Source: Klebsormidium nitens (lineage: Eukaryota; Plantae; Klebsormidiophyceae). From it: 64,000 bases of DNA. Positions 1,937 through 24,553 of the stretch are shown one piece after another (the first letter of the stretch is position 1; the number at the start of each line of letters is the position of its first letter). A model generated the notes under the pieces. The model searched no databases, was not told the DNA's origin, and worked only from the letters and a program-made list of their open reading frames with translations. The position numbers were made by a program, and so were the translations under genes. Location of the stretch: assembly GCA_000708835.1 (NCBI GenBank), contig DF237237.1, positions 1 through 64,000 of the forward strand. The letters run 5' to 3'.

Positions 1937-4004
1937 TCATAAGCTTTTGAGCTTGGCAATTGACCTCCTTGATGAGCCATATTTTTGAACGTAGAAATTC
2001 GCGAACAGTGCAAAGAGGCTTATCATGTAATAGAATAAGACCTACAAGAAACAAATGTATTTCGTTGGCTGTTCCCCATCCAGCCGAATTTGCAGATTGG
2101 ATAGCGAGGGCTTGCAAAGCTGATTCTCATTGTTCTCGAGCAAGGCAACTCTTTCCGAGAATGGTTCTGCAATACATGGATAGATAGTGGACACCAAAGA
2201 TGCAAGTGCAACGCTTGATGTGGTGTGCAATACTTACATTTGCAATGAATTGTGGATATGGGGGATTCTTGCCACTGACCACGACCCTTGACTCAATCAT
2301 GTTGATGATGAACTGGGTCATTTGCATCATAGTCAGGTACCTGCAAGCTCAAAAAAAGCTTCAGGCAGGTTGAAAACGTCGGGACAAAAAGATTGGTCAG
2401 GGTTGGACCCACTTATTGCAGCATAAAAGCACAAGACATTCCCTTATGAAAAAGCTTGATGCATGGGGACACAAGACCTCACCTCCCCCACCAGAGGTAC
2501 TTCCTTCTTCTGACTGGGTCCTTCCCAATTGCAGCAGAGAGCAGGTAATACAAGTACATGGCCACATGTACCCACGAATTCAAGGCAGCCGAGAAATAAG
2601 CTGCACGAAAGAAGGGGGTACTTCTTCATTTAGTACCGAAGCTCTGTACAAAGGAGGCAATAGACCTTCTGTTTTGGAGGATGCAAAGGTGCAAGTTGTA
2701 ATGGGGGATATGATGGATAAGAGAGAGTCAAACCCATATTCCTCGCTGTAACGAGCTTGCAGTCTAGACCCGCTGGATTAATCGCGCTGAATCTGCAAAA
2801 CGGCTGCCTTGAACTCGGGGCCTGAGACCAACACTTGGCATGTCCAGCAAGGCTCACCCTCGCCCCCTGGCGCGTGGTAGACGATAAGCCACCAGATGAG
2901 CGCGACAGAGCAGTGGTGGTACACGTGGAGGACGCTGACCTGGCGGGTGTTGCGCTTGAGCAGCATAATGAACTGCACTGAAACAGCGGCGGTGGGAACC
3001 TGACTGCCAAAACCACCCCACAAACTCCATCGCCGGGCATTCATGGGAAGGGGTATGCAGCAGCCTGTAACTGGGCACTCCAGATTGATGTGCACGTTCC
3101 TGACATGCGCTCACGACAACCGAACAAGTTGACCGTCCATTCGCTTGAAAGGACAGCATTTCAGTCCTGTGGTGCTGGGCACTTACTGTGTCGCCAAATT
3201 CGTAGATCTTGGAGATGAAGAAGAGGTAGAGCAAACGTGCCATCTGCAGAGACGTACGGTAATGGTCATGCCTTTGGACGCACTCCCACACACGCATTCT
3301 GACAAATTGGCGCGCAGGTCCAAAAAGCCACTACGAGCATTTGTGCTTCCTTCAACGAACATGTGCAAGCACAGTGGCCCTTGTGGTCTACCCAACACAA
3401 ACACTGGCACTCACCGCCAACTGACTTGGTTCATACCGATTGTGCCAGAGTGAGTACCTGCAAGCACGACATAAGTACATGTTTGGCTGCTACAATAGAT
3501 GAGCAACAGCCTGGCTTCCACGTGCTTCCGGGGCTTGCCACAAACCAGCCCACCACCAGTTGACGAAGCAGCTGAATTTACTAAAGACCCCGAGATCGAC
3601 TTCATGCACCTGCTGATGGCGTCCTCCAATGATGCTGCTTACCTGTTCCTAACTGCCTCTGTGATCAGTCCTCCACCCATGAATGCACTGAGCACAAACA
3701 AGAAGCAGTTGTGCAGAATGATCAGGGTTCTGAGGGGGAAAGGGTCTCTGGCCAGCGGTGCCGCGTTGCTTGAGCGGATCGCCAGCACCCCAAGCGCCAC
3801 TACTGCTAGGTACACTGTGCAGCACAGCACAACAGGGGTGGGGCTGGCTACGAAAGGCAGTGCGGCGGTGGCAGGGCTCAGGACGGGCTGTATGCCACAG
3901 CGCGCAAGCAGCGCAAAAACGCGCGGCGAGATCACTCCATCAAGAGCGCCATACACTGAGTGCAAAGCCAAGCGAACCCCGTCCAAAAGTTCCGAAGGCC
4001 CCAT
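1937..4004 (-). CDS. ELO: ELO/GNS1/SUR4-family fatty-acid elongase, delta-6-elongase type (7 exons)
   Basis: Spliced exons give RYSLWHNRYEPSQLA|MARLLYLFFISKIYEFGDT|FIMLLKRNTRQVSVLHVYHHCSVALIWWLIVYHAPGGE|AYFSAALNSWVHVAMYLYYLL..|YLTMMQMTQF..|VLFYYMISLFALFANFYVQKY..*. This carries the HxxHH box and the KxxEFxDT, NSxVHVxMYxYY and TxxQxxQF motifs, and closely resembles moss PSE1. Start ATG at 4004 is the likely but unproven start. Confidence 0.93.
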
Positions 4005-4532
4005 CGGACCTGAATGCCTCGAGCTGTAATGTATCCACCCTGACCTACATCCAAATATCCTCAGCTTAAACCTGGTTGTAAGAGCTGTTGTAGGACCCTT
4101 TCGCCACCATGAAATGAGGACAAACGACCACTTGCAACCGTCCGCCCCATTGCTCGCCCTGCATTGTGCCGTCAGCAAATCGCTCTGACCACCAAACACT
4201 CGATGCAGATCTGGAATCCTACATGCATGCGGTTCAACTTGAACTCGCTTTGGAATTTAAAATTTGATTTTGATTTGGACTTGCCGGGCCCCCGGGAGCT
4301 TGCATACTTCAACTGAAGGAGGCCCGGCGCCACCCGGGCCGCTGCGCGGCCATATACAGAGAGCCTCTGGGAGAGGGCGCAAACGCCCATGTACCGTACC
4401 TATAAAACTTGTATCCGACCGGTGCTTCGCTACCGGTGCTTCCGATAATCTCATTTCATGCGCAGATCTCGAGACGGTGCTACCTACCTACTACGGTACT
4501 ACCTATCACTAGGCTCTAGCTGCTAGCAGGCA

Positions 4533-4561
4533 CAAAGTTGACGAACAAAATTTGGGAAAAT
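4533..4561 (+). repeat. Left outer terminal inverted repeat
   Basis: caaagttgacgaacaaaatttgggaaaat versus the reverse complement of 18355-18384, caaagttgacgaataaacgttgggagaaat. Confidence 0.8.
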
Positions 4562-4925
4562 CGCCCTTCGTTGGACGGCGATAAAGTGCTCGGTTAAGAC
4601 CAAACCGCACGAAAACCCTAAGGTCAGTGGCTCAGCCGTTAGTAGGAACCCTAATCGGAGAGCATTCACAGGGAAGGGACGCGACAAAAGGTAGTGCCTT
4701 AAAGTGGGCGTCCTGTGACCCGTAACGCCTGACGTCAAAAAGCGACATCAGAGTGGATATTCAAGCTTGCCGTCGCCGACAAAATACGTCAGCAGGTCCT
4801 GTCGCGGCGACTGCAAAGCAGATCTGGTACTTGTTGTGTCGCTGCAGTTCGCGGCGACCTGACGCCCTCTTTAACCCTAACATAGGTACCAGATCAGTGC
4901 TTTGTGACCTAACCCTAAGGTCACC

Positions 4926-4958
4926 TACAGCTCTTTCCGAGCAACCGCCTAGGTTTAG
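4926..4958 (+). repeat. Left inner (subterminal) inverted repeat
   Basis: tacagctctttccgagcaaccgcctaggtttag; its reverse complement matches 18222-18254 with 2 mismatches. Confidence 0.85.
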
Positions 4959-5420
4959 TGACTACTTCTACTAGTCTAAATTTCGTCTAATTGTGACTAA
5001 TCGCGTCGGAGGTCTCTAAATTAGAACTAGGCTACAGCCTTGCGCGGTCCAATGGTAACCGCCAGGGGTCGCCAGTGACACTGAGAGTCGGACTGCACCC
5101 AGGGCCAGGGCTTCCTGCTGACTTCATGAGGAGAGGAGGCTGGCGACGAGCAGAATTGGGGCGCCCGGAAAGAAGCATTTGGACGGGCGGCAGCCCAAGG
5201 ATGATAGCCCTCACACCTCAGTTCAGCTGCAGCTTCCACGTGATTTAGCAGCATTCAGCATGCCGCTACCTACAGTCTTGCAGCATGCAGCTTGGTTGCC
5301 TGCTCAATCATCCGGTGAGCTGCAGAACATTGGAGCTCTGGTCAGTCGGCTCCTCCTATCTTCCTTCCAGCAATTGGCTTTACTGATTTGTAGACCGCCT
5401 TAGGGCCTTCAATCAGCAGC

Positions 5421-7595
5421 ATGGCACCGCTCCCTGGTGAAACCAGGGGTGAGGACCCTCGCTGCCAGGAAAGGCGGCGCACCAACAGATTCTCTGGCGA
5501 CTACAAGCCAGGAAAGCATTATGACATTGAGATGAGGCAGAGAATTGTTCAGGCATATAAGGTTAGGGCAGCTGAAATGGGTGAGGAGCGGCCTCATGGT
5601 GTGATGGCTGAGCTGGCGCGCGAGTTTGAAGTGGATCCAACCACAGTAAAAAAGTATGTCGTTCGTTATGAGGAGAGAAAAACCCTCAGCCACTAGCAAA
5701 AGGCACCACCAACTACAGCAAGGTTGAGCTGGCCCATCTGCTCTTTCTAGAAAAATTCTTAGAGCGCGACACGACTCGTTATATCTGGGAGCTGCGAGCG
5801 CTTATGGCGCAAACCTTGGAAGGCAGGGTGGAGCAACCATGGATCTCAGAGACATCGATTTGGCGCATTATGAAGGAGCAGCTGGGACTCTCTCACAAGA
5901 AGGTGAGGTTTGTATCCTGCTTCTCTTGCGCTTTGCACCATCAGCTTGTCAATTTGGATCCGCACAGGATGAGTTTGGGACTTTAGAAAAAGCTCCAGAA
6001 GTGCTTCATTGTCTCTATGTTTCAGAAGGTCCCCGCACAGCATCAAGCTTGTCTGGTGGGTTAGTCCCACCAGCTGACAGAGCAGTCGGTCACCGCTTTC
6101 CACGTTCTGGAAAGAATCTGCTTTGGTGTTTTCAGTTTGTCCGTCTTGAATTAAAAGGGTCGCTCAATAGCTCATTGATTCCAGGCAGCCAGTACTACTT
6201 CATAGTCCTTAAGTTGGGGCAGCGGCATGGTGTTTTATTGGTCCAAAGAACTGTGACTCATTGGACATGCGTTGGCAGTGGCTGACCTCTGAGTCGTTTT
6301 AAAATCATGTTGGGGCATCCGCTGCTGCAGCTTAGTCTCATTGCGTCCCAGCAAATGACAGCTGAGAACGAGGCGCGGCGGGAAGCGTACCTAGCGGAGG
6401 CCCTGCAGGTGCCCGCTGAGGAGATCCTCGTTGCGGACGAGACGGCGTTCAGTTATAACAACGGCCTCAGGCGCTATGGGTGGGCGCCCGCGCACGGGGA
6501 GACGCGGGCAGTGGACATCCGACCAAAGGTCTTCTGCCCTAATCACTCGGTGAGCGAGACGAACAATTCCGTGTCTGAGAGTTGGGTTGCTTCTCGGGGT
6601 TCAGGAACACCTTCAGGATCATCGATCGGATTCTAGATCAGTGGGGCGGGTGCTTGTCCGAGTTCAGAAAACACTCCCATGATTACTCAGCTTGCTCCGT
6701 TGTCTGGCTGAGCGGTAGTACTGGCAATCGTCAGACAAGATGTTGAGAGGGAGGTTGGGCGGCATAGGCCAGATCCTGAATGACTTAAAGAATATGCACT
6801 GGTCAAACCTGCAGTGCATCGGTGTCTTATCTACGGAGGGCTTCGAACACGTTTCAATCAAGAAAGGGGCTGTCGACGGCGAGGACTGGTGGGAATTCAT
6901 CTGCCAGTGCGAGCCAATCTTTGCCAGTGGGAAATTCAAGCTCTTTGTTGCGGACAACGCCAGCGTGCATAAGCGCATGGAGGAGCTGGTGCGGGTAAGT
7001 GCAGCTTCGAGAGCTCGCCATGTGTCTCGTGATCTGAGCTGACTGCAACCAGATTTGAAGGCTCGCTTTGCACATAGCTTCCCCGTATGTGATTCTTTGG
7101 TGGCAGTTCCTGCAATCGACTCTGGACTTGTCACTCAAGCTGGGAAAGTGCGAGCTTAACCCATGTCACATCGACCTGAAAAGAGTTCACGGTCCTCTCA
7201 TGCAGCACTTACTTCAAGAGTACGGCATCAAACTACTTTACCTGCCTGCCTACTCCCCAGGTATAATCGACATTGTCTTCGTGGGCAATGCTTCTCAGTT
7301 GCTTCTCAGTGGCACGTGAGTTGTTTCTCGCCTTCGAAAAGCCCTTCCTGCATGACATCGCTTTCTGCTTTTGGATGAAGAAAGGTGATAGCGCAACGTG
7401 ATGAACGTTGTGACAGGCTCCAACTTTGCGTATGCAGACCTGAGCCCCATTGAGGAGGCCTTCAGCAAAGTCAAAGTAGTGGCCCAGGATGGGCGGGAGG
7501 ACGTTCGGCGCGACATGGAGTCGCATATTGTGCGGGGATTTGGAAGCGTGACTCCCGACGATGCTCGAGGTTACTTTAGATTGTATACTCGATGA
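5421..7595 (+). pseudogene. IS630/Tc1-like DDE transposase, 5 exons, with a frameshift near 5690
   Basis: N-terminal HTH (LAREFEVDPTTVKKYV), second HTH (ISETSIWRIMKEQLGLSHKK|LSLIASQQ), VADETAF (first D), RRYGWAP, FVADNASVH (second D) and LLYLPAYSP|DLSPIEEAFSKVK (E). The first frame stops at 5694-5696 and the protein continues in the -1 frame (PLAKGTTNYSK). Confidence 0.92.
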
Positions 7596-8536
7596 TAATG
7601 CTAGCATTACTGCCCTCAATTGGATCAAGAAGCTCAAGTAATTATAGTTTTGGCTCGCATGTGCTCAATTCGGGTTGAAGTGAGCTCTCGGCAATCTTTC
7701 AGGCTTTACCAACTTGTCGATGATTGTACGTTGAAGTTTAGAGTGTCACTATCCAACCGGCTCAGGCTTTGCGCAAACCTAGTATTGCCAGTCAGTACGT
7801 TAGTCAGTAAATTGTTGCAGTCAAAGATTATCCGAGAAGCTTGCGCCCGCGTGGCTAGCCGAGGATTAGCGCGTCCTCGCTCTGCATGTTGCGCATGCAC
7901 CAGAAGCATTGGAAACATGCATGATGCCCTGTGACTTCAGAGTGCAATCACTATAGTATATATGGCCGCCCGCATGACGTCTTCATGTGATATTTATTGT
8001 TATTAATTTTGAGCGCAAAGCTTTAATATGACATACTAACGGAAGTTCGATCTGATGCCCGACCTTTACTAGAAGCATGCGCAACTACTATCATGCCTCA
8101 CTACGTACATACGCATTGCATGCGATCGAATCAATTCGAGGAGGCAGGCCGGATGGAAAGCGCGCGGGGCGCGGCGGCAATGCTTGCTACAAAAGTCGGA
8201 CCAGTCACTTGTGCATGCAAGGTCATAGTAGTCGGAAGTTCGTCCATCATCACAGTCGATGGGCTCTGCTTGACGTCACCATGAGCTGGTTGCTATTTTC
8301 CAGGGCCTGCAAAAAGTAGACATGAGCTGCGTTTGATCGTCGGAACAGCTTCAGTACAAAACATGTGGCACAGCAGCTTCGACCCGGCGCCCGCGACTGT
8401 AACCTTAATGCAAGTGAAGCTGAGTAACATTTATCAAGTTCGACCTTCGTTTGACCGTTGAAACTTGATAAAGAGGCTGGATATTGTGGACAGATTCAAA
8501 TTGTTTCGACACTGCTTTTAACTCAGTGGACTTAGT

Positions 8537-11500
8537 TCACTTGCATGAGACCAGCCTAATCTGGAATGCTTGATTTGAGGAGGCATGAATCCAAACGTCA
8601 TTTGCTGCATGCCGGGCCAAGCTGGCCCTTACCTCAAGAACCTTCTTGAAGAATTGGACGGAGCAGCCACTCAACCACTCGCCTCTCGCCCGGAGCTCTT
8701 GGACCAAGCAGCGCAAGGTGATCTCCGGAAGCCCCTTATTGTCCTTGAATAACCTCAAGATCGAATATGTGAGAGCTCTCTCCCTGCAAAGGTCGGTTGA
8801 TCACTTGTATCAGATCGATTGAACTTGGGCCATGGCTATAAACTGCCATCAGAGCTGACCAGTCGCCCCGGCTTAATACGAGTGGAGCTTGAGCAAAGGT
8901 CGTTGTGCACTTGATTGGCAATGCAGTTTAGGGTCTGGAGTCCGTTTGGGCTCACATTTCGTAGGACGGTGGACTATCGTCCTCCTCCTCCTCTGCGTCA
9001 TCGTAACCAGGCACTTTGGGGTCTTTCTCTCGGTCATTGTACCGCCAGATCTCTGTTGCCACATTAGTACTCACCAACGCAGAGTCCTTCTTCCTCACGA
9101 GCTGTACATGAACGAGATTCACGCAACTGCCATTGGTACGTCATTCAGCCAGCATGTATGCTCTGCTTCAAGTTCAACGCTCACAAAGACCTTGCGCGCT
9201 CACTGTAACTGCTACCATTGTTCAAAGTGCCATACCAAGTGAAACCGTGGCAATTCATATGGCTGCTTACGGTACGGTTGAACAGTGAGTACCTTCTTGT
9301 GGAACCGTAGCAGAAAAGAATGACTGTTCATCCGGAAACAACAACGGAAAAGTCGGGAAGTGATGCGTTTCCTAATGATTGCCAGTATCCGCAAAACAGT
9401 AGTGCTTATTGGCTCATTCGACACTTAATCAGGCCACGCCAAACTTGCAGACAACGTCCCAACGGCGACCTCGAAGAAGCTTACAGCTCAAGAAGCAGCT
9501 CGAAAAGCCTTACAATTGTTTCGTTGTAGTAGCTGCCATCAGCGGGATCCTTTTTGATGGAGATGTCTGTTACTTTCATGTCCACATAGCTGCAAACAGG
9601 AAATCGAAAGGGATTGATGCCTTTCAGCAGTGCTACTTTTGGATTTTCAGCAGATTCGAAAATGTTCACTGTTGAGATACTTACAGGCTTCGTCGACTAG
9701 AAATAGAAGATCAAGCAATTGCACAGCAGTTTTCGGAAGGACGCAATCAAGAAGCGAATTAGTACGTTGTTGAAAAGATGGATCGACGGCCTTACAACTG
9801 GCGCTTTCTATCGAAAAGCTCCACTTTCTCTCCAACGGCCGGGCTCAGAGGGACTGGCGGATGCACAATCGTGTCCGGCCCCTGCCAAAAGAATGGTACA
9901 TTAACTTGTCAATCAGATTGTCAGTATCTAAAAAGCTTCTTTTACTAACCGCTTCTACAATTGTGCTGGTTCATGGGAGACAACTAGAGCTCGCTTACCA
10001 TACGGTAAAACAGGATTCCAAACCAATTGGCAATGGAAATCTTGTGAAAGGGAGAGGTGCTGACCAGTGAATCAGTGAGACGAGTTGAGCTAGGTGCTAA
10101 AATCATCGGCGAAATTTACCAGGCTTACCTGAATCGAAGCTTCGAGAGCAACTCGTGCAGATGTTGACAGCCAACCGCAGACTCCAAAAGTCTTTGATAA
10201 GCTCCTGTAAGAATAGGAAATAGGAGCTCAGGTGGACTCGAAAAGGTTGTCTTCATGCCGGTCAGCGTATCTGAGCAAACCCAATTTTGGGATCCTGATG
10301 CATTTGATCCCGATGAGAGGCAAATGGTTGCTCAAACAGGTTTCGAAAAGGTAGTACGATACGAAAGAAACACAGATTTTCAGTGCTCGAATCTGCAAGA
10401 GTGAATACTCTTTGCCAACTGCGACCTACTCCCAAGAGCTCGCCTCCTCGCCGTGATCATCAGTTAGAATGCTCTCCACAGTGTCAGCAACTCAGAATCG
10501 CTCATCAGTCCCTCTATGAGGCCACCTTTTTGCAAGTCTGCTGTGCGGAGGAGGAATCTGCCTGGTAGACAAAAGACTGAATAGATTCAAGAGATTGCTT
10601 GCGAATGCGAATCATACCGGCACATTGGATATGGCACTGATGAATGAAGAACAACAAGAGTCAAAACTGGAGGTGCTTCATATTCAATTACATGCCAGAT
10701 CATTGAGAGTTCCAAGAGCCAAGGGGCTCAAAGGCAGTTCGAAGGTATACATATTCGGCTCACCTATAGCAGAAGCTTCAAGAGCTTCGATGTCCTCAGC
10801 CGCTCCCGAATTGGAAGCCTTGTAGAATCTTTGAATAAAGGACCAGTATGACCGCTTGCTGCAAAAGCGTTCCGAAGTACTGTGCATAAGATCGAGTGAC
10901 CTGAAGCAACTTAGGGATTCTAAAATGTTCTTGTAGATCTGCAGCCTATTGTCAGAACAAAGTATCAACCTTCCAAAGTTTTCAACTGAAAGTTGATGAG
11001 TTATGCTCACGTGATGGGAGGCCGCTCTCGTTGGTCGGGGTTTTCTTGGTGGTCGGACTGGCCAGCGTGTTCAGCAGGACCGTTTGTTGGTGGAGGAGCG
11101 CCATCGACTTTTGCTGCTGCTGCAACATATGCACGAGATTGAGTTCAATTACCAAGTCAGACAAATTCAAGCCTTTGATCGCAGAGCCTGCAGTCGACAT
11201 CCTTACTTTAAACTTGGACTTCAAAATTCATGTCAGATATCAAAATTACAACAGCCCCTCGAGCGAGTTTTGATCAGAGACCGTGTCTCAGTAGGTCGAA
11301 GTCGAACCAGGGCGACTGACCGACTTCGAGCAGACAGACTCTGATTGAAATAATCTGAGATGGGTCAGCACTGACGCAAAACAAATTACATGTCATTTGA
11401 TTGGACATTACCTTGAGATGGACCCTCCTCGGGAAACACTGAGCGTCGAGTGTAAGCAACGGTGCCTGGTCTTCCATGTAAGACCTGTACGCTCTTTTGA

Positions 11501-14500
11501 AGTTTTGTCAAGCTCGTCGGCAGTCGGTCCTGAAATTGACCGAGCTTTGCTTGCTTCTTCATAGAACCCGTACCTTTTGCAGAAGCTTTTGATTCGTCCG
11601 CTGGCACCGTGCTTTGTTTCTCAGAAGATTTTTCGGAACGGCTAGGAGGTTGGAGGCTATCCAAAGACGCACTTCGAGGAGCTTTATCCCTGGCTTGCCT
11701 TTCACTTCCTACAGGCTCCAGGTTTTCCGGCACGTTTTTCGCAACGGCTTTTCGTTCCTGCCCCCCCGCCGCAGTGTCAGCGCGCCCAGGGGACGCACGC
11801 AAGCCGCTGGCAAGGAGATCATTGGAAGGTTGCCGACCCCCCAATCCGACGGCGGCCCTGCCTGCCGCAAGCGAGGCGCGCCCTGTGGACGCACGCAGGT
11901 CGCTGGCAGGAGGCTTCGGTTCTTTACCGACGTCGGATGTCTGGCAGGGTTTGCTAGCCACGGCGATCCCCTCCGCTGTAGGCGCGGCGCGCCCAGAGGA
12001 CGCGCTCAAGCCGCTAGCAGGGGCTTGGGAGCCAAAAAGGCTCCGATCGAGCCCTTTCGCTGGAGGCGAGGCGCACCTCAAAGGCGCGCACAAGCCAGAC
12101 GCGTCAGGGCTTTCGGGGCTGAATCGTGCCGGAATTTTCTGAGATTCTTTTGCCGTTCCCTCAGAAGACGTGCTCAAGCCATCAATTTTGAGAGCAGCTG
12201 ATTCTGTCGCCTTTCGAATCCGCTTTCGCTTTTCTCGTCTCTGCTTTCTTTCCCTGTGTTTAGAGCCTCCTCGAGATCGTTTTTTGGCTTTTTGGGCCTC
12301 GTCCAGGGCTGCAGGCGTATCGGTGCTCGAAGAAGGATCTTCATCCTCTTCTCGTTTCCGTTTTTTAGAGCTTCGCCGAGGTCCTTGCGCCACTCTCTGA
12401 ACAGCTACTTCGGAAGTAGAAGGGTCTCCATCTTCTTGCGGATCGGTTGTGATGGGGTCGAGCGTGAAGTCAAGGACTGAAAGCAGAAGAAAGGATCAAG
12501 GAACAAGGTAAGAATCTCACAGATTTGCCAAAAAAAGACCCAACAAGGTGTTCCAACAATCAGCAGATGAAGTTGGCCATATGCCCCAGACAAGTTGGCA
12601 AAGCTTCAAGACAGAACCATATCTTTTTAGCCGTTCGAAGGGGATTCTTTGCTAGCCTCAACTCTGTGGTACCTGTCGGACATGAGAGCTCTGTAAGCGA
12701 TCATCTCGAAGCAAGCTAGTGTTATGCTTCGTAAGGAGATTTGAATGATTGCAACTTACGTGTCTGGATCAGATGCAGCCTTTTCTGGTCCTCGTGTACT
12801 TGCAAGGCTTCTCTTGAATCGTTCAGGAAGACGTTGTACTCTTGTATTTGTTGTTGGACGATCCCAATCTCACGTTGCAACCGGACAAGCTTGCCTTGCA
12901 GATCTTCCAGTGTAGTTTCGTACGCTGAGACTTCACCACTGCAGGCAAGCGGCGATGCCATACAACTCTTCAGAGATCGGCAACCATGTGAACTTCATTA
13001 AAATCTGCTAGCACAAACAAAAAGTATCAATTTCGTCGACCCTTAATAAGTACTGCATCAGTCTACTTTTTATAATCTAATGATCCTGAGGGAAAGCTCG
13101 ACTGAAAACACTGAAAGAAAGCCGAAGACTTAGTTATGATAGCACCGTGTCAGAGTTCAGGGCCTACCGGACATGCTCCATCGCCTCTGTAACATCTGCA
13201 GTCTGTTCCGAGACCAGCTTTTGGAGTTCAGGAAACCTGTTCAGGCACGAGAAGTTGCTCATTAGGTTTCCCACTGGCATCAATCTGAATAAAAGTACAC
13301 TGTGAGTCCGTTGAAACAACGAAGTACTGAAGAGCTCGCATAAGTTTGTGTTCAATAGAAGGTGACATGACAGCTTCATTGAATCTTTTCCGGAAGTGAC
13401 TTTAAGGTCTATCGTATTTAGGAATGAGTTTCTACCTTTGCACAGAAGCCTCAAGAATCTTGTCCACACTCTCAGCCAGTTCGACGTCTTGTAGCACCTG
13501 CGGATAAGCCATGGGATTCGTTGTGAATCAGGGACACATTCAAATCCTATATGAAAAAGCACAACTGGCTGTGCGAACCTAGCCTCCCGACTCCTCATCC
13601 TTGCCAGTGGCAACTTCTGCTTATTGTTACTTCATGCTTTGGAGCACGAATGCATTGAGTCCTGCGAGTCAATGGCACTTTGCAAATTTGTGCAACGACA
13701 GTTAGTAAGAGTGAGCTAAAAAGCTGCAAAAGGTGCAAAGTTTTTTTGGAAGAGAAGGTGATAACTCACGTCCAGCACCGCTTCCTTCCCCTCGGCACTT
13801 TCCACTTTCAGATCCGGGCTTTCCATCAACAGAAGCTCTTGCAGTCCCAGTACGTGAACCTTCCTACAAATTGGACGGTTGAGGTATACTTTCACTCCAA
13901 TGATCCATACAGCCAGACATCAAGCCGTGATCAACATACTGATACTCTTTACGATCGACCAAACAGGCTGCTCCTACTTTCGTTTTCTCCGAGGGTTTGC
14001 TTCTTTGCTTGATAAGTTTGTCAAATTTTCATTACCTTGAGGTGTAAACGTTGGTCAAAATCTTGGTAATTGCAACCACCAAACGCTCGAGCTTCGCGTT
14101 GGCTTCGTACTTCTGCTCGTCCACGTCGGGTAGTTCAATTGATTCAAACCTGCACAGGCACAAAAGACACGTCCTAAGTCGACTGGAGAATTCCGACAGG
14201 GTCGTGAGCGAAAAGTGTTTTCTGATTTGCCTCCGAGAATGTGGATCCTGGTCAGAGCTTTGAAAACACATTTGTATCACGGTTCTTTATATTAATTGCT
14301 TCATTAGATCCCATTGGAGAAGAAACTTCAAAGGCAATGAAGAAAAGTCAGGACCCCAAGGAGTTGAGCAAACGTATGAATGGGCTCCTCAGCTAGCTAA
14401 AGCTTGGGCAATGGCCACCTTGATAAGGTGTCAGAAACGTACTCGCTGTGGTCAAGCTCCATGTCGGTGACATCAGCAGCAGCAGCAGCTTCCCTTGTGT

Positions 14501-17500
14501 CGGCAGCCAAGTTGGAAGGCTTCTCCCTGTTACAAAGGAGACACCGGACGGTTTTCAATGCACACTGCCAGGAGTTGTTATAAATCGTAGATGCACATTG
14601 GGAATTGATTTGAAGCCGAACTTGCCGTTGAAGCATGCGAAATGGAACAAAAGCAAAGCCTGCTCCACACACTGAAGTTGCTCTTGGAAAAACGACCAAT
14701 GAAATCCAGTACTGCATTTGTGCCCCACTTTACGTCACTTATTGAAGTGAAATCTTTTTGGTACCGACCTGGGATTGCCATTGGCACTGTCATTGGCCGA
14801 GTCCTTAGCTGGGGACGAGTCTTGATTTTGACTTTTACGGCGCTGTCTTTCAGACGGCTCGGGAGCAGGATCAAAGGGCCTCTGCTCATCTTCAACGTTG
14901 ATTGGAGTTTCGGACTTGTTGTCATTAGGATTTGACGGCTCCGGGTCGAAAAGATGATCAAGACCCTCGTTGACGTAGTCTTCAGCCTCTTTCCGGATGG
15001 CCTCGACCCGTTCCTCCTGCAGATGGTTAGATCATTATATAAGGAGCTGGAAGTTTTCAACAACGAGACGGAATCTGGTGAACGAACGCTCAAAAGGTGC
15101 TGCAAGTTGAAATGAACGATTTCATTTCAGGGAAAGCAGCTAGCTTGAAGAGACCATGACAGCCTCGGTTGATTTTGGGGAGCTCTTGGCAATGGCCGGT
15201 TTGGGGTTTACTGATAGAAATTCTCCTGACCTCCGTGTGGTCAGGCAGAGCGGCCCTCCCTTGCGGCCGCCTCGGATGAATGGCCTCCCGTCTGAGCAGC
15301 TCCCTGAAGACAAAGTCCCTAAATGAATGCTAGTAGCTCGTTTTTAATTCTATGTAAGTCATGCTTCTGTCAGCAAGCAGGTTTCTCCGCAAGAGGAGGG
15401 TAAAACAATCATCGCTTCAACCACCAGCATCTGCAAGTAGCACACAGCATACTTCAGGAAGGTGATTTTCTCCTAAACGAAAGCTTGCTATCACTTTATC
15501 ATTGCAGCTAGAAACCACCTTACTTGTGGAGTCTTGGCAGCAGATGGTCATTCAGAATGCCCAGCTCTTGCACCTTCTCGATCTTGCCGTTGATTTTGCG
15601 CTTGGCGAATCTGTGGGCCTTGTAGGGGCGAAAGTGCTCGTGTGCGAGTTGCAGAAGCCGTTGATCGGAAAGCTCGGCCAGCTCCTCGTCCGAGTATACT
15701 GGTTCTGAGGTGACGTCAAAGTGATCGCCCGTGAACCCGTTCACCAGACGCGCCCCTTTGTGATTCCGATTCTTCGGATTATCGGGATGATCCTGCACAT
15801 GAGCACCATGCGTGGAGCCGTTTCAGATATCAAGCTCAGACTTCTTCGAAGAAAGACGCGGACGAAGTTCATGTATCTTAAAAGCTTATACAATACATGA
15901 CACGGCTCAGATCTCGCTTTTCACAGTGCATACAAAAGGAGCCTGTCTTCGTACTCACGCTCCAATAGAAACCTGCTTGGTATCCGGCATCACGCCTCAA
16001 ACGCTTATCCTCCTTTCCTGGGAGCGCCACCAAACCGAGATCGTCAAGAATGTTGGTCCTGCAAGACGAACAGGACAAGCACGGGCTTTTGTTTGGCAAG
16101 GGCATCTTTGATTCGTTACAAGCCTACAACATTGCAAGAAAGCAGAAAAGTCTCGAGACCTTGTACAAGTTTGTGCATAACAATTCCATTCTATCCTTCA
16201 GTCTTGGGGGATCAAAAGATTCTCAAAAAGTATTGAAGCACTGAATTGACGAGCTTTGACAACTCACCACTTGGTCACCTCGTTGTTCAAAGTTTCTGGT
16301 TCGTGATGCACGTTAGAAGGGTCATCATCAGGCTCCTCCCCGCACTTTTCGCAGACGGGGTGGTTTCTGCTTCTGTCCCCACAGCCTCCATGTCTCTTCC
16401 TCCAGCATGGACACCCCGCCTTTCCTTTCTTAGGGCACTTTTTCCCGTCAACACGATGGCCTGGCTGATGGCAGTGGCTACAGTAAACTGTCCTTTTTGT
16501 TCGAGCCTTTTTTGCAGAGACGGAGCTAACCTTCACGCCTTTCTTCTTTTCCTTGCTTTTAAGCTTAACCTTCTGAGACTTCTCTCCTCGCCGATCAGCA
16601 ATTGGCTGATCACTCTCGTCATCGGAGCTTTGCGGCGTTTCAGCCACCCCCTCAGTTTGCTCTGAATCAGTCTCCATGCCGGTCTAGGAAACGAAGGAAA
16701 GAGCGTAAGAAAGTCCCGAAATCTTGTAAGAAACAGTTGCGCGACTGTAGCGTGAAAGCTTCTTTGTCTTGACCTTGAAGATCTTCGATCTGCAAGAGAA
16801 ATCACTTCGAAAATTGAGCTTGAAGGTCTTCTGCAACGTGGTCATTTGTTTAATGTAGCACTGGATGCAACATTCCAAAGAATGCTCAAGTAAGACATGG
16901 CAATCTGTTTGGCATGGGGCTGTTTGGCAACCAGGTTTCATTTGAGTGGAGAGCTTAGAGTCAACCAGGCCTGTCCATTCAATCATATCATCAAGAATGG
17001 AGCACGAAATTCAACTGAGACATTCTAAAGAGCTTACCTTTTCAGATTCGGTGAGCTTAGAATTCAAGAGTCGCGTTGAATGGAGTCAATCAAGCTGTAT
17101 TTTCATCCCTGCATGGATCAGGACAGTGGTTTGGTACGGCACTGCTTCTGAGCAAAGAATTTACAGAGCGCGCCGGGGCAGAGGTCAAGCAGGCAAAAGG
17201 AAGTTCAGAAATGGGTTAAGAGCAAGCCAAGAAGATCGAGCAACAACTTTGACTATACATATAATGCGGTCTCTCATGTGTTACTGGAATCATCGTTTCA
17301 GCAAACGTTTCCATGTCCTGAAGGCTTGAGCACGCCCTCTTGGCATTGTCAGCAGATTTTGAGCAGCCGACAAGTTCTGACTCAGATCTCGTTATTCAAG
17401 CTCACCTGCCAGTTTTCAAGCTGGGCCTCAACCGAGCAGACTCTTCTGAAACTGAAAGCTTGAAGATTCTTGCAACATTCACTTTCTGCCAGCCTTTCTG

Positions 17501-17802
17501 CAACTTTCTCTTGTAGCTTGGCTTCACATGGACGCCATTCAACCTGACATGTTGCAATGAGCTGGGCTCAATCACGGCATTGCCTCTGACCCGTTTATTG
17601 GCAACGACTCTTGAATCTGCTCATTCAAGGCAGTGGAAGATCAGCAACTAGCAAACTTCATAGCTTCATAGCTTCAAAGCTGCGAAAGGTTGAAATGCAG
17701 CTCCCAAATCGGATGAAGCGCGAGCACAAGAAAGCAGAATAATAGGAAGGCGCTTCTACCTGGACAATTGCGGTACTCACGTCGGCCAACCAGCATGTGC
17801 AT
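8537..17802 (-). pseudogene. Multi-exon cargo gene inside the transposon: Cys/His cluster, coiled coil, basic low-complexity region, SH3/Tudor-like and DEK-C-like segments; probably decaying
   Basis: Exons from 16683 down to ~10565 join with consistent phases at GT-AG sites (NNE|ACNESK..FYWS|DHPDNPK..LHK|DFVFRE..DHTE|EERVEA..; EHVR|GEVSAY..LIQT|LLDFTLD joining ORF 11386-12393). There is an in-frame TGA at 10492-10494. Distal exons read AVGEKVELFDRKRQF|YVDMKVTDISIK.. and MERALTYSILRLFKDNKGLPEITLRCLVQELRARG. The 5-prime exons (17000-17802) and the 10480-9900 joins are uncertain. Confidence 0.6.
11781..12021 (-). repeat. Three ~35-bp coding repeats (ASGL[RS]ASxGRA) in the long cargo exon
   Basis: gcgcgccc..ggacgcacgcaagccgctggca variants at ~11781, ~11876 and ~11987. 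Confidence 0.7.
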
Positions 17803-18221
17803 CTACATTCAAGCCAGGCTAATCATCTTGCTAGGACCTGGTGGCCCAACCGACATTGTGGTTCGCGCACAGTTCGCAACAATGCATCCGCATTGTGAAT
17901 CATGGGGCCTAAGCAGATAAGCAAACGAAAACGACCTGCCAGCGATCAGCACGGTAATTTCATATTTTGAAACTCAGCTGTGAACGTTTGAGCTGAATTT
18001 GAGCTGCTCCGTTCTTCTGCAATGCTGCAATCATGACCGTCTGATCAGAAGCAAGAAGCTCAGTGCTGTCTGGTTGCCGCACTGACCGCACTTTGAAGAC
18101 TCAGCTGAGTGTGCTGACTGTGTATCAAGTCTAGACTCGGACTCACGGCCAGACTACAATTAGTCAGTCGCGCGCGCGTAACGGACACTAAATTTAGTCT
18201 AAATTTAGTTGGGGTTAGTGT

Positions 18222-18254
18222 CTAAACCTAGGCGGTTGCTCGCGAAGAGCTGTA
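18222..18254 (-). repeat. Right inner inverted repeat
   Basis: ctaaacctaggcggttgctcgcgaagagctgta, the inverted partner of 4926-4958. Confidence 0.85.
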
Positions 18255-18354
18255 AATGCCCGGTTGCTTCTGCGCTTTACAAGGATGGGTACCGCACGAC
18301 ATGTGACGGTTTGTACCATCCAAAGCCATTGTGCGCCCGGTACCGTCCGAACAA

Positions 18355-18384
18355 ATTTCTCCCAACGTTTATTCGTCAACTTTG
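18355..18384 (-). repeat. Right outer terminal inverted repeat followed by TA
   Basis: atttctcccaacgtttattcgtcaactttg then TA at 18385-18386. Confidence 0.8.
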
Positions 18385-19728
18385 TACGTTTTGCAGCAGG
18401 GGCATCGCCCACTTTTAAGCTTCGCCGCCAGCGGCGCCGGTGCCCTTGGTATGGTGACGTATATACGGTATATGGCGCCATATGGTTCGTTTGACGTGGG
18501 CCCTATACCGGTAGCTCTTTTTGTGTGCACGTTGGTTTAATACGGTAGTCCTAGGGAGATGGTCACTTCGTATGTATGTATGTACGGTATGTATGTGAAC
18601 CTGGGTGAACGCGTGCACACCCAGGTGCATAGCGCAAAAATGCTTGTAAACTTGTGGCGCACAATTGAATTGGTACACACCTTGATGGCGCCCATCCAAA
18701 CCAATTTGAGTGTGTGGGCAGTTCATTTATGTACAAAGAAATACAGTTTTGCCTGTTTGGCGATCCTGGCGTTTGTGCGGCGTGCCCTCTGGGCCTGTAC
18801 CTGGACGGCGCTGGGCCCGGCCCCCGCCTACACATTTTGACAAGTTCTGGGGGCGATTTATCAATCGCGAAAAATGGCAATGCGCAGCTCCATCGCGTGT
18901 GTGAGATTCATCTCGATCTAGATACGAGCCGTACGACGATGCCCGGTACTCGCTGCGGCCCAAAGTATTCCAATTCGCCGGGCGCAGCTGGGGCTATGTT
19001 TCAACGCGATTGGTTGCCCGGTGTAACCCTACCGGCAGCTGCAGAAGTTTTGGAACTTGGTGCAACTTTCCCGGCCTATGATTCCAGGAAAGTTACTGAG
19101 TTGCAACTTCTACAACTTGTTTCGGAACTCTCGTTCAAATTCTAATGTTGACCGGCAATGGATTGTGGAGGCGGAAACGGGAATGGACGAACAGGGGCAA
19201 TACAAGGCAATGCCACGCCTGACGGCGTTTGCTGGCATTGCCAAAAAATTCACCGAGTAGAAATTAGGCCGAGAGTACCGCTAGGTCTGACACGTCACAC
19301 GGTGCTGATTTTGAAAGTTTGAACGCGAAAGTTGAAACCGCATTTTGGAGGCAACTCGAAGTGCTGCCTTGCTGCATGGCCATTCAAGTTGGCGCGCCCA
19401 GCAATCCGGGACGCGTCTAGTAGGCAGGAATTAGGATAGGTAGCCCGATTGCGATAGATAACTTATGGCGCCTTCATCCTTTGCCACCAATATTAACTAG
19501 GTGGTGCTGCTGTTCAGGAAACCTACAGCTTAGCCTACCATACTAGCAGGCTAGAAATTTAGTGGAGCTCTGAAAATGGTGATGCAGATGGATTGCTTGC
19601 CAGCGTTTTGATTTCAAAGGTGGCAATGGAGGATACTCTGCTTGTGTCCACCGGGCAAGGATGGCGTGATCTGCGGGGAACGCTGATCGATCTCATATTT
19701 TAGCAGTGCCCCGGCAGGGCCTGACGGC

Positions 19729-22700
19729 ATGGCAGCCATCATTCGCCAAGGCAGCGCGGTGCTGCCCCTCAATGTTGGCACCGCCTCCGCACAGGGGACG
19801 TTGGAAGCAGGAAGCCGGAGGCAGTGGTGCCACAGCAATTCTCGCTGTTTTGGCGACCAAGCAACTCCTTTTCCCGACATAAATGCCGGGTCCTGGCCAG
19901 GGTTGGGAATCAGTGATCTGAGACGAGCATCAAGAAGACTTCTCTTGAGGCGCTTATACCGTGCGGATCCCAGGGGATCCCAGCTAACCCAGCAGCAGGG
20001 TGGCTGCGTCCGCTGCTCCCTCCCGGCCGCTGAGGAGGCGCCCATTGTGAGCAGCCACACGCATGCCCTTGGCGGGAGCCCTGTGGGGGCTGCCAGCAGC
20101 TTTGAGGTGCCGCATCGTGCTCGCTGGCCATGGCCGCTGGTGCGGGTAGAGCAGGCACAGGGTCCTCAGGGAGTGGGGCATGCGCAGATACTATGCCCGG
20201 ATTTTGGAGGTGCCTCAAAAGGCAGCAGACCCGGTCTACGATTACGTTTGCCTCGCCCGCTGTTTGGTCGTCCTCCTCGAGCCATCCCTGCCCTCGGCGT
20301 GACCCAGCAAGAGCTGCTGCTGGTGCTGGGGGCGGGCGGGCTCGTGCTGCTGGCGGTGCTCAACAAGATTCTTTTCAAGATGGCCATTGCCTCTATGCCG
20401 GACCAGCCGTTTGTGCTGGCCAACATCTGCACATTTGGGTGAGGGCATACCGGCTAGGCTTGTGCCAAGATCATTCAGATACAGAATTAACTTGTTTCAT
20501 CATGGACTAATATGCAGTGCAGAATAGTAGTCGGCAGTCTGTGTCTCTACCATGCTGCCCTGTAAGGACGACACGTAGCAGCACCGCACTTGCCGTCTGC
20601 AGCATCAGTCCAACTCGCGGGTGTCAGGTCTGCCGTTTGTCGCCTGCTTGACCCCTCTCCCCCGCTCCCTGGCCAGCTACCTGGTGCTGTACAGCGGCAT
20701 CGTGTGCCACCGCTGGCGCCGCGGGGCTGTGAGCCCAGACATGCTCCGGTACCCCAAAACCAAATTTGTCTGCATCGGAGCACTTGAAGCGGCGGGGGCC
20801 ATGCTTGGCTTGTTTGCGGCAGGTCAGATGTTGTGTCTTTTCTCAACAGTGAACACTGACATATTATGAATACCCACTTGCCTGCAACTCTGAGAGGTGT
20901 CATGTGCTCCTGGACTGAGGGTTGATCCTTGAACGGTCGGTGCTTCTTTTGGCAATTCTGTAGACCTTACCAAACGACGTTCTTACTGCAAGCTGCAACA
21001 GCCTTCAAAATCTGACGCTAGCTTGCCTATTGTTGCTTATTCGTGCAGGGTATGTTCCCGGTACTATTCTTCCCATCCTGAGCCAGGTGCGTGCTACACA
21101 CTTGCGCAGATTGGGAGTGCTGCGTGCTCCAGACTCCAGTCGTAATTGCTCCCTCTGTGCCTTTGAAAGAAAGCCTTCAGCTCTGCCCGCTGTGCACTGC
21201 ACTCCCTCCTTCAATCAGGACCTCCATCGCTCTAACTTGCCATGCTTCCTCCTTGTGCGCGCAGGGGTACCTGGTGTGGCAGCTGGTCCTGTCGGCAATC
21301 TTCCTCCGCCGGCGCTATTCCCTGGGCCAGCTAGTGGGCGTGGTGGTGTCCTTGGCAGGGATTGCAACAGTGGTGACCAAGTGAGTCTGCTGTTCCTTTC
21401 CAGCTTTAGCTCCTATACTTTTGGAGGCTCTACCTTATTGAGCATCGCAGCTCTCTACTTTCAACGGATCTCTCGCTGCTGTCTCTGAAGAGTAAATTGG
21501 AAGTTGGTTCGGATAAAATTCAAGCGCTGTCCCCTCACTAACGATCACCAACCGAGCTCCGGCACTGCTCCCCTTTTCCCCTTGAACCGTATTCTGCTCC
21601 CACAGGTGGCGCCGCTTTCTCTTACTGCATGCCCTGTCCCTTGCAGCGCCCATGCTGGCCCCGGTGTGCTGGCGAGCGGCCCGTCGTTTGTGTTCCCGTG
21701 CCTGTACCTGCTCAGCGCGTCGTTCTCCGCTGCGGCCTCGCTGGTCAAGGAGCGCCTGTTCCAGGAGGCCCCGCAGCACCTGGGCGCGGGGCGCAGCCTA
21801 GACCTGTTTGTGGTCAACCTGCTGGGGTCCGCCTTCCAGGTGAGCACACGCACAGCGCAGGCGGACGCTGCAGTTCAACTGTGATAAGTCTCCATTTGTC
21901 ATTGTTGTGTCAATTCCTCAGAAGATAAGCACGCCTCCAGCTGAGGTGCTCGTAGCAAGGGTTGAGCATCGGAGCAACAGGGGAGCAGCATGAATCGACG
22001 CCTGTAAAATGAGAGTGAGTTGCCATTTCTCGTTGGGTTTTTCCTTCCCCACTGCTCATGGTTCCTGAATCGAGTAACAAGGTCCAATGACGGATGTGGT
22101 CTGGATTGTCCCCAGGGAAGCATGTGACCTCGTTTTTTGTAAGCAATTGGGACGTCTCCTCTTGCTTTAGGCTGTCACTCAAGCTCCCCTTGCTCTGTGG
22201 GTGCAAGACTGCGAAGCGCCGTCTGCACAAACCTCTGGTTTCCCAATGCTTGCCCCCCTCCGCCCTGCAGTTCATGTTCCTCCTGCTGCTACTCCCGCTC
22301 GTCGCTAGTGCTCGCGGCGTCCCCCCCCCCGCCCTGCCTGCTCACCTGGCCACCGGCGCGGGCTGCTTCCTGGGCCACGCTGCAGTGGGGGGGGCTCCTT
22401 GCCACGGGGCGCCCCTGCTGCCGCTGGTCTACATCACGACCAACCTCGCGTTCAACGTGGCGCAGCTGGCGCTGCTCAAGGCGACCACGGCCGTGGTGCC
22501 CTCCATCGCGCTCACGCTCGCAGGTGAGGGGCCCGTGTAGCTCGATCAGCCGTGCGTAATGTCCCCAAAAGTGAGTTGCTCGAGGCTGGTCTGTTGATGC
22601 TCCCTGGGGAACCTCTGTCCATACGACCACCAGCCTATGATGCCCATGAGTTTGAGACGGGATTGTGAACTGAAGCAACTCAGCAAGCAGACTCGAAAAA

Positions 22701-24553
22701 GCAGACCCCATCGATCTCTGCCCATTCATCACGTCCACTTTTTCCGTTTCTCTTTCTCACTTCAGAAGCCGGCCATGTGCGCTCATTCAGGGCAGCCCAT
22801 GCGGTGGTTTAATACACCTTGGCGGATTGGATCCTCTTAAGTGTAGCTTTTATTCTTCTGGGGGGCTCCAGAAAGAGAAGCACCTTGGTTGACAGCCGTA
22901 TCTTTGCTGCTAATTCGGTTGAGCATTCGGCTCTGTATCTCTTCGGTAATGCCCAGTGGTGTGCCCCATTCGTGAGCGTTGGAGTTTGGAATAACGGATC
23001 GGCAGGGTGAGACTGATAGAGAATTCGGTTGGGCGCCTGGTTTTCCGGGCCTGCCNNNNNNNNNNNNNNNNNNNNNNNNNNNNNNNNNNNNNNNNNNNNN
23101 NNNNNNNNNNNNNNNNNNNNNNNNNNNNNNNNNNNNNNNNNNNNNNNNNNNNNNNNNNNNNNNNNNNNNNNNNNNNNNNNNNNNNNNNNNNNNNNNNNNN
23201 NNNNNNNNNNNNNNNNNNNNNNNNNNNNNNNNNNNNNNNNNNNNNNNNNNNNNNNNNNNNNNNNNNNNNNNNNNNNNNNNNNNNNNNNNNNNNNNNNNNN
23301 NNNNNNNNNNNNNNNNNNNNNNNNNNNNNNNNNNNNNNNNNNNNNNNNNNNNNNNNNNNNNNNNNNNNNNNNNNNNNNNNNNNNNNNNNNNNNNNNNNNN
23401 NNNNNNNNNNNNNNNNNNNNNNNNNNNNNNNNNNNNNNNNNNNNNNNNNNNNNNNNNNNNNNNNNNNNNNNNNNNNNNNNNNNNNNNNNNNNNNNNNNNN
23501 NNNNNNNNNNNNNNNNNNNNNNNNNNNNNNNNNNNNNNNNNNNNNNNNNNNNNNNNNNNNNNNNNNNNNNNNNNNNNNNNNNNNNNNNNNNNNNNNNNNN
23601 NNNNNNNNNNNNNNNNNNNNNNNNNNNNNNNNNNNNNNNNNNNNNNNNNNNNNNNNNNNNNNNNNNNNNNNNNNNNNNNNNNNNNNNNNNNNNNNNNNNN
23701 NNNNNNNNNNNNNNNNNNNNNNNNNNNNNNNNNNNNNNNNNNNNNNNNNNNNNNNNNNNNNNNNNNNNNNNNNNNNNNNNNNNNNNNNNNNNNNNNNNNN
23801 NNNNNNNNNNNNNNNNNNNNNNNNNNNNNNNNNNNNNNNNNNNNGGGATCCAAGCAGTCGAATCCCAAGTCTACTGCTAACGGAAGCCGCGCAAGTTGTT
23901 GGCTGCGGTCTACCCTTATTCTCACGTGCTTTTACTACGGTCCAGCTTCAAGCGGTTGCAACGAAAGCTGGGTGGTGTGCGTCAAGATTTTGTTCGTTGC
24001 CTGGACTCTGTACATCATTGCTTGCGCAGGAACGGTCGGACCTGTATCTGTCTAGTGGTCGTGCATATTCTCAAGCAGAAGCGTTGGGGCCGGACTCTAC
24101 GCCGTCGTCAGAATGATCGAGATAATGATTGCCGGAGTTGAGTTAGAAAACAGAATTCATCCCGGCTCCTCTACAGGAGCCCTACTTGCAGGTTGGTTGT
24201 AACTGCGAAACTCTGCAGACATGTTCTGGCCCCTTACCGCTTCCTGTCCTTGATGTGAGGTTGACAAGAGCGTTTGCCGTGGTGCAGTTCCTCTCTCTGT
24301 GGCGGCCTTCACCCTGCCGCTGCCGCTGCTGGGCACCCCGTGCGCCCTGCCCCCCAGCTTTGTGAGTGGCACCTTCATCCTGTTGGCCGGCCTCATCATG
24401 TACGTGCTCTCGGGGAAGCAACAGCCCACGCAGGTGCCCCGCCCCACGCTCTCCCTCCAGCCCCACTTCGAGCGTGCAGTGGCCACGTCCACTCGCCAAG
24501 GCCTCACTCCCCGCGTGCGGGTTCTCTCAAAAAGGTGGGCTCACGGCCCCTAG
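19729..24553 (+). CDS. CLT: CRT-like (chloroquine-resistance-transporter-like) plastid thiol transporter
   Basis: Long Ser/Arg/Ala-rich N-terminal extension (transit-peptide-like), then LAVLNKILFKMA..PFVLANICTFG, PKTKFVCIGALEAAG, GYVPGTILPILSQ, WQLVLSAIFLRRRYSLGQLVG, VKERLFQEA..LDLFVVNLLGSAFQ, GAPLLPLVYITTNLAFNV and VPLSVAAFTLPLPLLG. One intron contains the N-gap 23056-23844. Confidence 0.92.
23056..23844. other. Assembly gap (N run)
   Basis: Run of N; smaller gaps at 27663-27682, 49030-49049 and 56152-56261. Confidence 1.

Follow-up and report, generated by a model that had tools for sequence, protein, structure and literature searches.

Is the segment at positions 4533-18384 of the Klebsormidium nitens sequence analysed here a single mobile element, or does it result from the fortuitous association of a small transposon with a gene that is foreign to it? 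Transposons of the IS630/Tc1/mariner (ITm) superfamily are the textbook minimal DNA transposons of eukaryotes: they carry one gene, measure 1-3 kb and lose activity as their size increases. The present segment, analysed as one copy within a stretch of 64 kb (the window), is 13,852 bp long and encloses, between inverted repeats, a transposase gene and a second gene of convergent orientation, which is called the cargo in the following. The explanation favoured here, with moderate confidence, is that 4533-18384 represents one unusually large cut-and-paste ITm transposon, in which the association of two convergent genes is a standing design. This reading is proposed because the features of the two ends are collinear and inverted, the transposase lies directly inside one of these ends, no other end is located nearby, no foreign element is present in the interior and the remaining space is occupied by a conserved orphan gene. 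Everything between the two ends would thus move as one unit, and the cargo would be a constant part of a family.

The ends of the segment, which begins with CAAAGTTG... at position 4533, comprise the following features, listed with the type of evidence where several methods were used:

4533..4560, + strand: outer left terminal inverted repeat, starting with CAAAGTTGACGAA (repeat search, pattern search, blastn)
18357..18384, - strand: outer right terminal inverted repeat (repeat search, pattern search, blastn)
4919..4964, + strand: inner left inverted-repeat block (repeat search, pattern search, alignment, blastn)
18216..18261, - strand: inner right inverted-repeat block (repeat search, pattern search, alignment, blastn)
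4965..5030, + strand: left subterminal short repeats of the type CTAAATT/CTAATT
18188..18209: right subterminal palindromic tandem, CTAAATTTAGT x2, with an 11-bp unit
4614..4918, + strand: left spacer with AACCCTAA 8-mers (blastn, pattern count)
4531..4532: left flank dinucleotide CA, where TA is expected for an ITm insertion
18385..18386: right flank TA

Inverted pairs were sought by a repeat search covering 4000-19000, and both ends (4500-5420 and 17950-18420) were used as queries for a sensitive local blastn against the whole window. The outer pair (4532-4560 and 18357-18385) extends over 29 nt, of which 25 are identical (86%). The inner pair (4919-4964 and 18216-18261) extends over 46 nt with 39 identities (85%), and the 31/33 identity reported for its 33-nt core in the initial annotation was confirmed by direct reading. 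These two pairs are the only significant blastn matches in the window (E 4e-9 for the inner and 1e-3 for the outer one). A 17-mer of the outer block occurs exactly twice in the 64 kb, against 0.18 expected from shuffles; the same number of occurrences was found for a 20-mer of the inner block, against 0.00 expected (none in 100 shuffles). The outer block has no sequence in common with the inner one, and the spacers that separate them, of 358 nt (left) and 95 nt (right), can barely be aligned. Just inside the inner block, CTAAATT-type repeats are observed at both ends (4976, 5016 and 18188-18208), which together account for 6 of the 8 copies present in the window. The order of the three features, outer block, inner block and CTAAATT, is identical at both ends, in inverted orientation. 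The previous description of two separate repeat blocks in the same order at both ends, unequally spaced on the left and on the right, is therefore borne out by the repeat search, blastn and the pattern searches.

The start of the outer pair coincides exactly with a fitting TA/CA flank. The check for a TA duplication gave TA on the right and CA on the left, a caution already voiced in the initial annotation and confirmed by direct reading; a single transition would account for the CA, and the pairing of A 4532 with T 18385 is retained. The comparison of both ends with the whole window by blastn revealed nothing downstream of the transposase that could be the remains of a right end, in agreement with the earlier reading. 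Nested termini are likewise absent inside the element, and no internal inverted or long direct repeats were found that would mark a nested element. The 14% divergence of the ends can hardly be ascribed to neutral drift, since the transposase is otherwise free of stops over ~355 codons. The ends were probably imperfect from the outset, as is common in IS630-type elements.

The left spacer has two peculiarities of its own. The AACCCTAA 8-mer, which resembles a telobox or a telomere unit, occurs four times in the 64 kb, always within 4614-4918, on the + strand and upstream of the transposase, and is absent from the right end; these copies may represent a promoter element or subterminal binding repeats. 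In addition, a 13-bp direct repeat, AACCCTAAGGTCA, is found at 4614-4626 and 4911-4923, 297 bp apart, with two AACCCTAA copies within. The stretch bounded by AACCCTAAGGTCA largely explains why the left spacer is longer than the right one, and this direct repeat may mark an internal duplication or insertion.

The gene located inside the left end is composed of five exons:

5421..5902, + strand: transposase exon 1, two helix-turn-helix units, weak HTH_28 match, frameshifted
6352..6549, + strand: transposase exon 2, first catalytic D in VADET, IS630 profile positions 125-169
6815..6994, + strand: transposase exon 3, second catalytic D in VADNASVH, DDE_3 positions 25-94 and IS630 positions 168-237
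7206..7260, + strand: transposase exon 4, LLYLPAYSP, DDE_3 positions 95-117
7438..7595, + strand: transposase exon 5, DLSPIEEAFSKVK, catalytic E and stop codon

The exons of this gene and of the cargo were searched singly against the libraries, and the joined proteins were used locally for the intron phases and the spacing of the motifs. All four transposase introns are of the GT-AG type, and their phases (0, 0, 0 and 1), determined from stop-to-stop pieces and the splice context, are mutually consistent. Against Pfam, exon 1 matches HTH_28 weakly (E 0.009), and DDE_3 is matched by exon 3 at positions 25-94 (E 8e-4) and by exon 4 at positions 95-117 (E 0.25). Against NCBIfam, the IS630 profile is matched by exon 2 at positions 125-169 (E 0.11) and by exon 3 at positions 168-237 (E 1e-4). 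In the ESM Atlas, 29 of the 30 clusters nearest to the exon-3 piece belong to DDE_3/IS630; a sequence search of the PDB with the same exon returned chance matches only. The catalytic motifs VADET, VADNASVH and YSPDLSPIEEAFSKVK (YSPDLSPIEE) can be read directly, and the spacing of 36 between the second D and the E defines a DD36E triad. The assignment of the left gene to the ITm superfamily, as an IS630-like transposase with a DDE_3 domain, is supported by these collinear exon matches in two independent libraries together with the motifs, which upholds the initial annotation on this point.

The copy present in the window does not encode a full-length transposase, because the frame of exon 1 shifts by one base between ~5650 and 5690. 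The frame opened by the ATG stops at 5694-5696, and from 5690 onwards the -1 frame encodes the rest of the second helix-turn-helix. This shift is either a one-base frameshift in this copy or an assembly error. Two other interpretations were rejected: a 62-nt intron bypassing the shift would delete the linker of the DNA-binding domain, and programmed -1 frameshifting would lack its slippery heptamer.

The cargo gene is read from the opposite end of the segment:

16268..16677, - strand: cargo exon A, ATG conserved in the homologues, ending at a GTGAGT donor
15959..16058, - strand: cargo exon B, 100 nt, joining A and C in phase with canonical AG/GT, read directly
15524..15792, - strand: cargo exon C, 64% identical to P0004 without gaps
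8537..15523, - strand: candidate further cargo exons, predicted as an ab initio chain with a stop at ~8537

Direct reading showed that exons A, B and C (16677-15524) join in phase with canonical splice sites. The GT-AG introns that interrupt the coding regions mark the sequence as eukaryotic, and nothing points to a human origin. The product of exon A displays an acidic N-terminus followed by a basic stretch and a Cys/His cluster (CX2CX4HX6C, then CXCX7C...H..CX2C) in which every Cys and His is invariant in 3 sequences. Relatives of the corresponding open reading frame (ORF), 16677-16264, were sought at similar length among 5.8 billion clusters, then with a profile among 1.84 billion representatives of all lengths. 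The first search yielded one relative, P0001 (145 aa, 57% identity over 100% of the query), which originates from a 7,098-bp contig of the ENA. The second, with a two-sequence profile, added only P0002, which is 48% identical to exon A and comes from a 1,605-bp Logan contig; a further match, to a repeat protein, was spurious. The start methionine and the end point are common to the cargo ORF, P0001 and P0002, and this end corresponds to the GTGAGT donor, in which the frame is closed by the TGA. For exon C, too, one relative was recovered, P0004 (64% identical and 87% similar, without gaps), from an ENA contig that likewise measures 7,098 bp. The contigs of P0001 and P0004 being alike in source and length, these homologues of exons A and C appear to share a single contig, and the linkage of the two exons appears to be conserved in another organism.

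The in-phase exons and the conserved homologues indicate, at the level of sequence, that the cargo is a genuine multi-exon gene under protein-level constraint, with its first three exons validated. The databases contain three relatives in total, all unnamed, and the gene is regarded as an orphan. Since no others were recovered among the 1.84 billion representatives, the cargo is not a widespread host gene.

The 9-kb multi-exon gene of the initial annotation can thus be retained as a real intron-containing gene, with exons A-C in phase, and its 9-kb extent is an ab initio prediction. Beyond exon C, a simple dynamic programme scoring codons and splice sites, with only the validated exons as its training set, assembles a chain of 12-26 additional exons, to be taken as a sketch: 16 of them are common to at least 4 of 5 parameter settings, and the chain stops at 8537 in 3 of the 5 settings and at 7749 in the other 2. 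It includes a predicted coiled-coil exon (12760-12938) and a 369-codon open frame (11389-12495). With the ab initio stop taken as the end of the cargo, the 3' ends of the two genes would be separated by <1 kb.

Inside this open frame, 3-4 degenerate repeats of ~100 bp were observed on the - strand at 11753-12180; they encode Ala/Ser/Gly/Arg-rich protein repeats and are preceded by a Lys/Arg-rich stretch resembling a nuclear localisation signal. As the opposite strand is open here too, a long ORF alone is weak coding evidence. A 22-nt piece of the repeat recurs in inverted orientation at 17323-17344.

The interior was also examined by a domain search of the 142 six-frame pieces of 7600-18300. 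None of these pieces matched a Pfam or PHROG family above chance, and they contain no second transposase, reverse transcriptase, integrase, helicase, Fanzor/TnpB or chromatin domain. Scans of the element for Rfam families and tRNAs were likewise negative. A single piece (1/142) matched pRN1_helical, a primase helical domain, at 8739-8927 on the - strand (E 0.0011), which was taken as chance, its frame being outside the exon chain. The idea of a chromatin-acting cargo protein was abandoned, as no domain match supports it. For exon A, AlphaFold with a 3-row alignment gave an unusable model (pLDDT 49), and the ESM features (0.76) were at the level of noise.

Further copies were sought in several collections. 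No relative was found for cargo exon A in the JGI metagenomes and IMG/VR, for cargo exon C in the GTDB genomes or for transposase exon 3 in the JGI metagenomes and IMG/VR. The 20-mer of the inner block has no match in IMG/VR. The 17-mer of the outer block has 11 single matches there, none of them paired, a number estimated from the size of the collection to be that of chance.

These data must be confronted with the observations that weigh against a large two-gene transposon. A single copy is known. The left flank is CA instead of TA, and the identity of the ends reaches only 85-86%. Each per-exon match of the transposase falls under the curated cut-off, because the introns split the domain. 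Past exon C, the exon chain is ab initio only. A search with transposase exon 3 retrieved no related sequence of 58-187 aa from the database in which the cargo homologues were found, so the ENA source shows no sign of the same transposase. Finally, natural Tc1/mariner transposition is known to drop steeply with size (treated in general terms in PMC6431247).

Several of these points would be explained if an ordinary IS630-like element of ~3.5 kb had later gained ~10.5 kb of unrelated DNA between the stop codon of the transposase and the right subterminal region. Insertion, capture or repair would have brought in this DNA, a gene of host or foreign origin; no cargo family would then exist, and transposition of the unit at its present size may never have taken place. 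The single known copy, a length of 13.9 kb far over the usual ITm size and the missing exon-3 relative in the database holding the cargo homologues are in line with such a one-off event, as is the G+C content of the interior (0.48), somewhat unlike that of the transposase part (0.525). Against this scenario, neither a seam, a duplicated end, the termini of an inserted element nor a target duplication can be seen at 7.6-8.5 kb or 17.7-18.2 kb. No known mobile-element protein is encoded inside, and the compact convergent layout, with both genes starting from the ends, is difficult to reconcile with a random gain. Moreover, a parental copy of the cargo is absent from the 1.84 billion representatives, a library that may not hold the annotated proteins of this alga. 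A one-off acquisition is judged less likely than a two-gene transposon; in that case the locus would amount to a dead element of the ordinary kind, in which an orphan gene became trapped.

The genomic context bears on a second alternative. On the left side, the segment is preceded by an intron-containing fatty-acid elongase gene of the ELO family (~2600-4200, - strand; Pfam ELO, E 2e-8 and 5e-7), whose first exon ends near 4200, placing its 5' end at a distance of only ~330 bp from the element. On the right side, it is followed by a CRT-like/SLC35-type transporter gene (~20400-22540, + strand; Pfam CRT-like, E 1e-4 in two exons). Once the 13.85 kb are removed, these divergent ELO and CRT-like genes lie ~2 kb apart. 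This normal distance between host neighbours speaks against the proposal that two independent, partly deleted copies of a short family, located 10 kb apart, bracket a lineage-specific host gene, one copy having kept its left end and transposase and the other its right end only. The absence of a left TA, the 85-86% similarity of the ends and the difference between their spacers (358 and 95 nt) would all be natural under this proposal. It requires, however, two separate truncations in the right orientation, yet no remnant of the lost ends has survived, and the enclosed gene is an orphan, for which the databases contain only three relatives. This makes it a distinctly improbable account. As for the inverted repeats being a product of chance, with a decayed transposase lying beside a host gene, the weakness of the outer pair taken alone (E ~1e-3 in 64 kb) counts for very little against an inner pair at E 4e-9 without an equivalent in 100 shuffles, three separate features recurring in the same inverted order and an outer pair that starts exactly where a TA/CA flank fits, and this possibility can practically be dismissed.

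The composition of the region was examined as well. The G+C content is 0.49 inside the element and 0.52-0.57 around it, which counts in favour of one large element, and the observed/expected ratio of CpG reveals no boundary at the element ends. The flanks (4400-4530 and 18420-18600) are rich in short motifs of the TACGGTA/ACCGGT type and in TATG repeats, and the target of the insertion may have been a low-complexity or repeat-rich intergenic stretch. An assembly gap (run of N) is present at ~23050-23860.

If the segment is indeed one large two-gene transposon, its mobility can be pictured as follows. A transposase supplied by an intact member of the family would bind the structured ends by means of its paired helix-turn-helix domain, cut the whole unit out and paste it into a TA, the second gene travelling as a standing passenger. 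The cargo product is probably a nuclear accessory factor binding nucleic acids or proteins, its Cys/His cluster having the appearance of a zinc-binding module. Because the inner blocks are inverted and the genes convergent, both blocks are oriented alike with respect to the gene that each precedes, and lie 457 bp before the ATG of the transposase and ~1.5 kb before that of the cargo; a shared regulatory role of the inner blocks is possible.

A wider and rather doubtful proposition can be built on this scheme. Klebsormidium-type algae would harbour an IS630-like family of >13 kb, the largest natural ITm elements, always carrying an intron-rich orphan gene for a nuclear zinc-binding/coiled-coil protein that is needed for the mobility of such large units or for escape from silencing, with both genes driven from the shared inner blocks. 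Should the large transposon prove real, a natural 14-kb ITm element with a constant second gene would raise the question of how it is mobilised, and would direct attention to the role of the accessory protein, for example in end synapsis, targeting or anti-silencing.

How does such an element compare with known systems? Like autonomous ITm/DDE_3 elements, it encodes a transposase of ~355 codons with an N-terminal pair of helix-turn-helix units and a DDE domain. The motifs DE...DNASxH...YSPDLxPIE resemble those of bacterial-type IS630, and the terminal inverted repeats begin with CA beside a TA, on the right side here, as in other ITm elements. It departs from them by its size (13.9 kb versus 1-3 kb), by its second, larger gene, by the four spliceosomal introns of the transposase gene and by the two unrelated repeat blocks of each end.

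Long structured ends are a property of the inverted repeat/direct repeat (IR/DR) group of Tc1-like elements, such as Sleeping Beauty, Tc3 and Minos, in which mutually similar outer and inner sites are separated by less conserved DNA. The ends described here have the same general plan, with an outer and an inner site split by less conserved DNA. Unlike the IR/DR sites, their outer and inner blocks have no common sequence, and the spacers differ fourfold between the two ends. As the blocks are not copies of each other, the layout is not that of IR/DR elements. The constant pairing of a transposase gene with a second gene, for a DNA-binding-type protein, is known from PIF/Harbinger. That system differs from the present element by its transposase superfamily and its target duplication, and no Myb/SANT match was found here.

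Closer parallels exist within the ITm superfamily itself. The ciliate TBE elements are Tc1/mariner transposons of ~4 kb whose three ORFs (42, 22 and 57 kD) are poor in introns; the 57-kD product is a zinc-finger/kinase protein, one extra ORF is in opposite orientation, and the ends contain telomeric repeats (PMC4724952). The K. nitens element resembles TBE/Tec in combining an ITm transposase with additional coding capacity inside the inverted repeats, and the extra TBE ORFs include a zinc-finger protein. It differs by its two genes, by the absence of a kinase match among the 142 pieces, by a multi-exon cargo region of ~10 kb and by terminal repeats devoid of telomere-type units, AACCCTAA being confined to a non-terminal position in the left spacer. 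Mariner/Tc1 elements encoding Fanzor1 in addition to a transposase have also been described, and a Fanzor1 from Klebsormidium nitens itself has been tested (PMC10530073). They share with the present element an ITm-type organization with a second gene; its cargo is far larger than theirs, shows no TnpB, RuvC or OrfB zinc-ribbon signal in the 142 six-frame pieces and is accompanied by no Rfam RNA. The statement of the initial annotation that ITm elements encode only a transposase was therefore too strong, in view of the three ORFs of TBE (PMC4724952) and of the Fanzor-carrying Mariner/Tc1 elements (PMC10530073). Multi-gene ITm elements being already known, what the K. nitens transposon would add to them, if the favoured explanation is correct, is its size, its intron-rich orphan cargo and its two-block ends.

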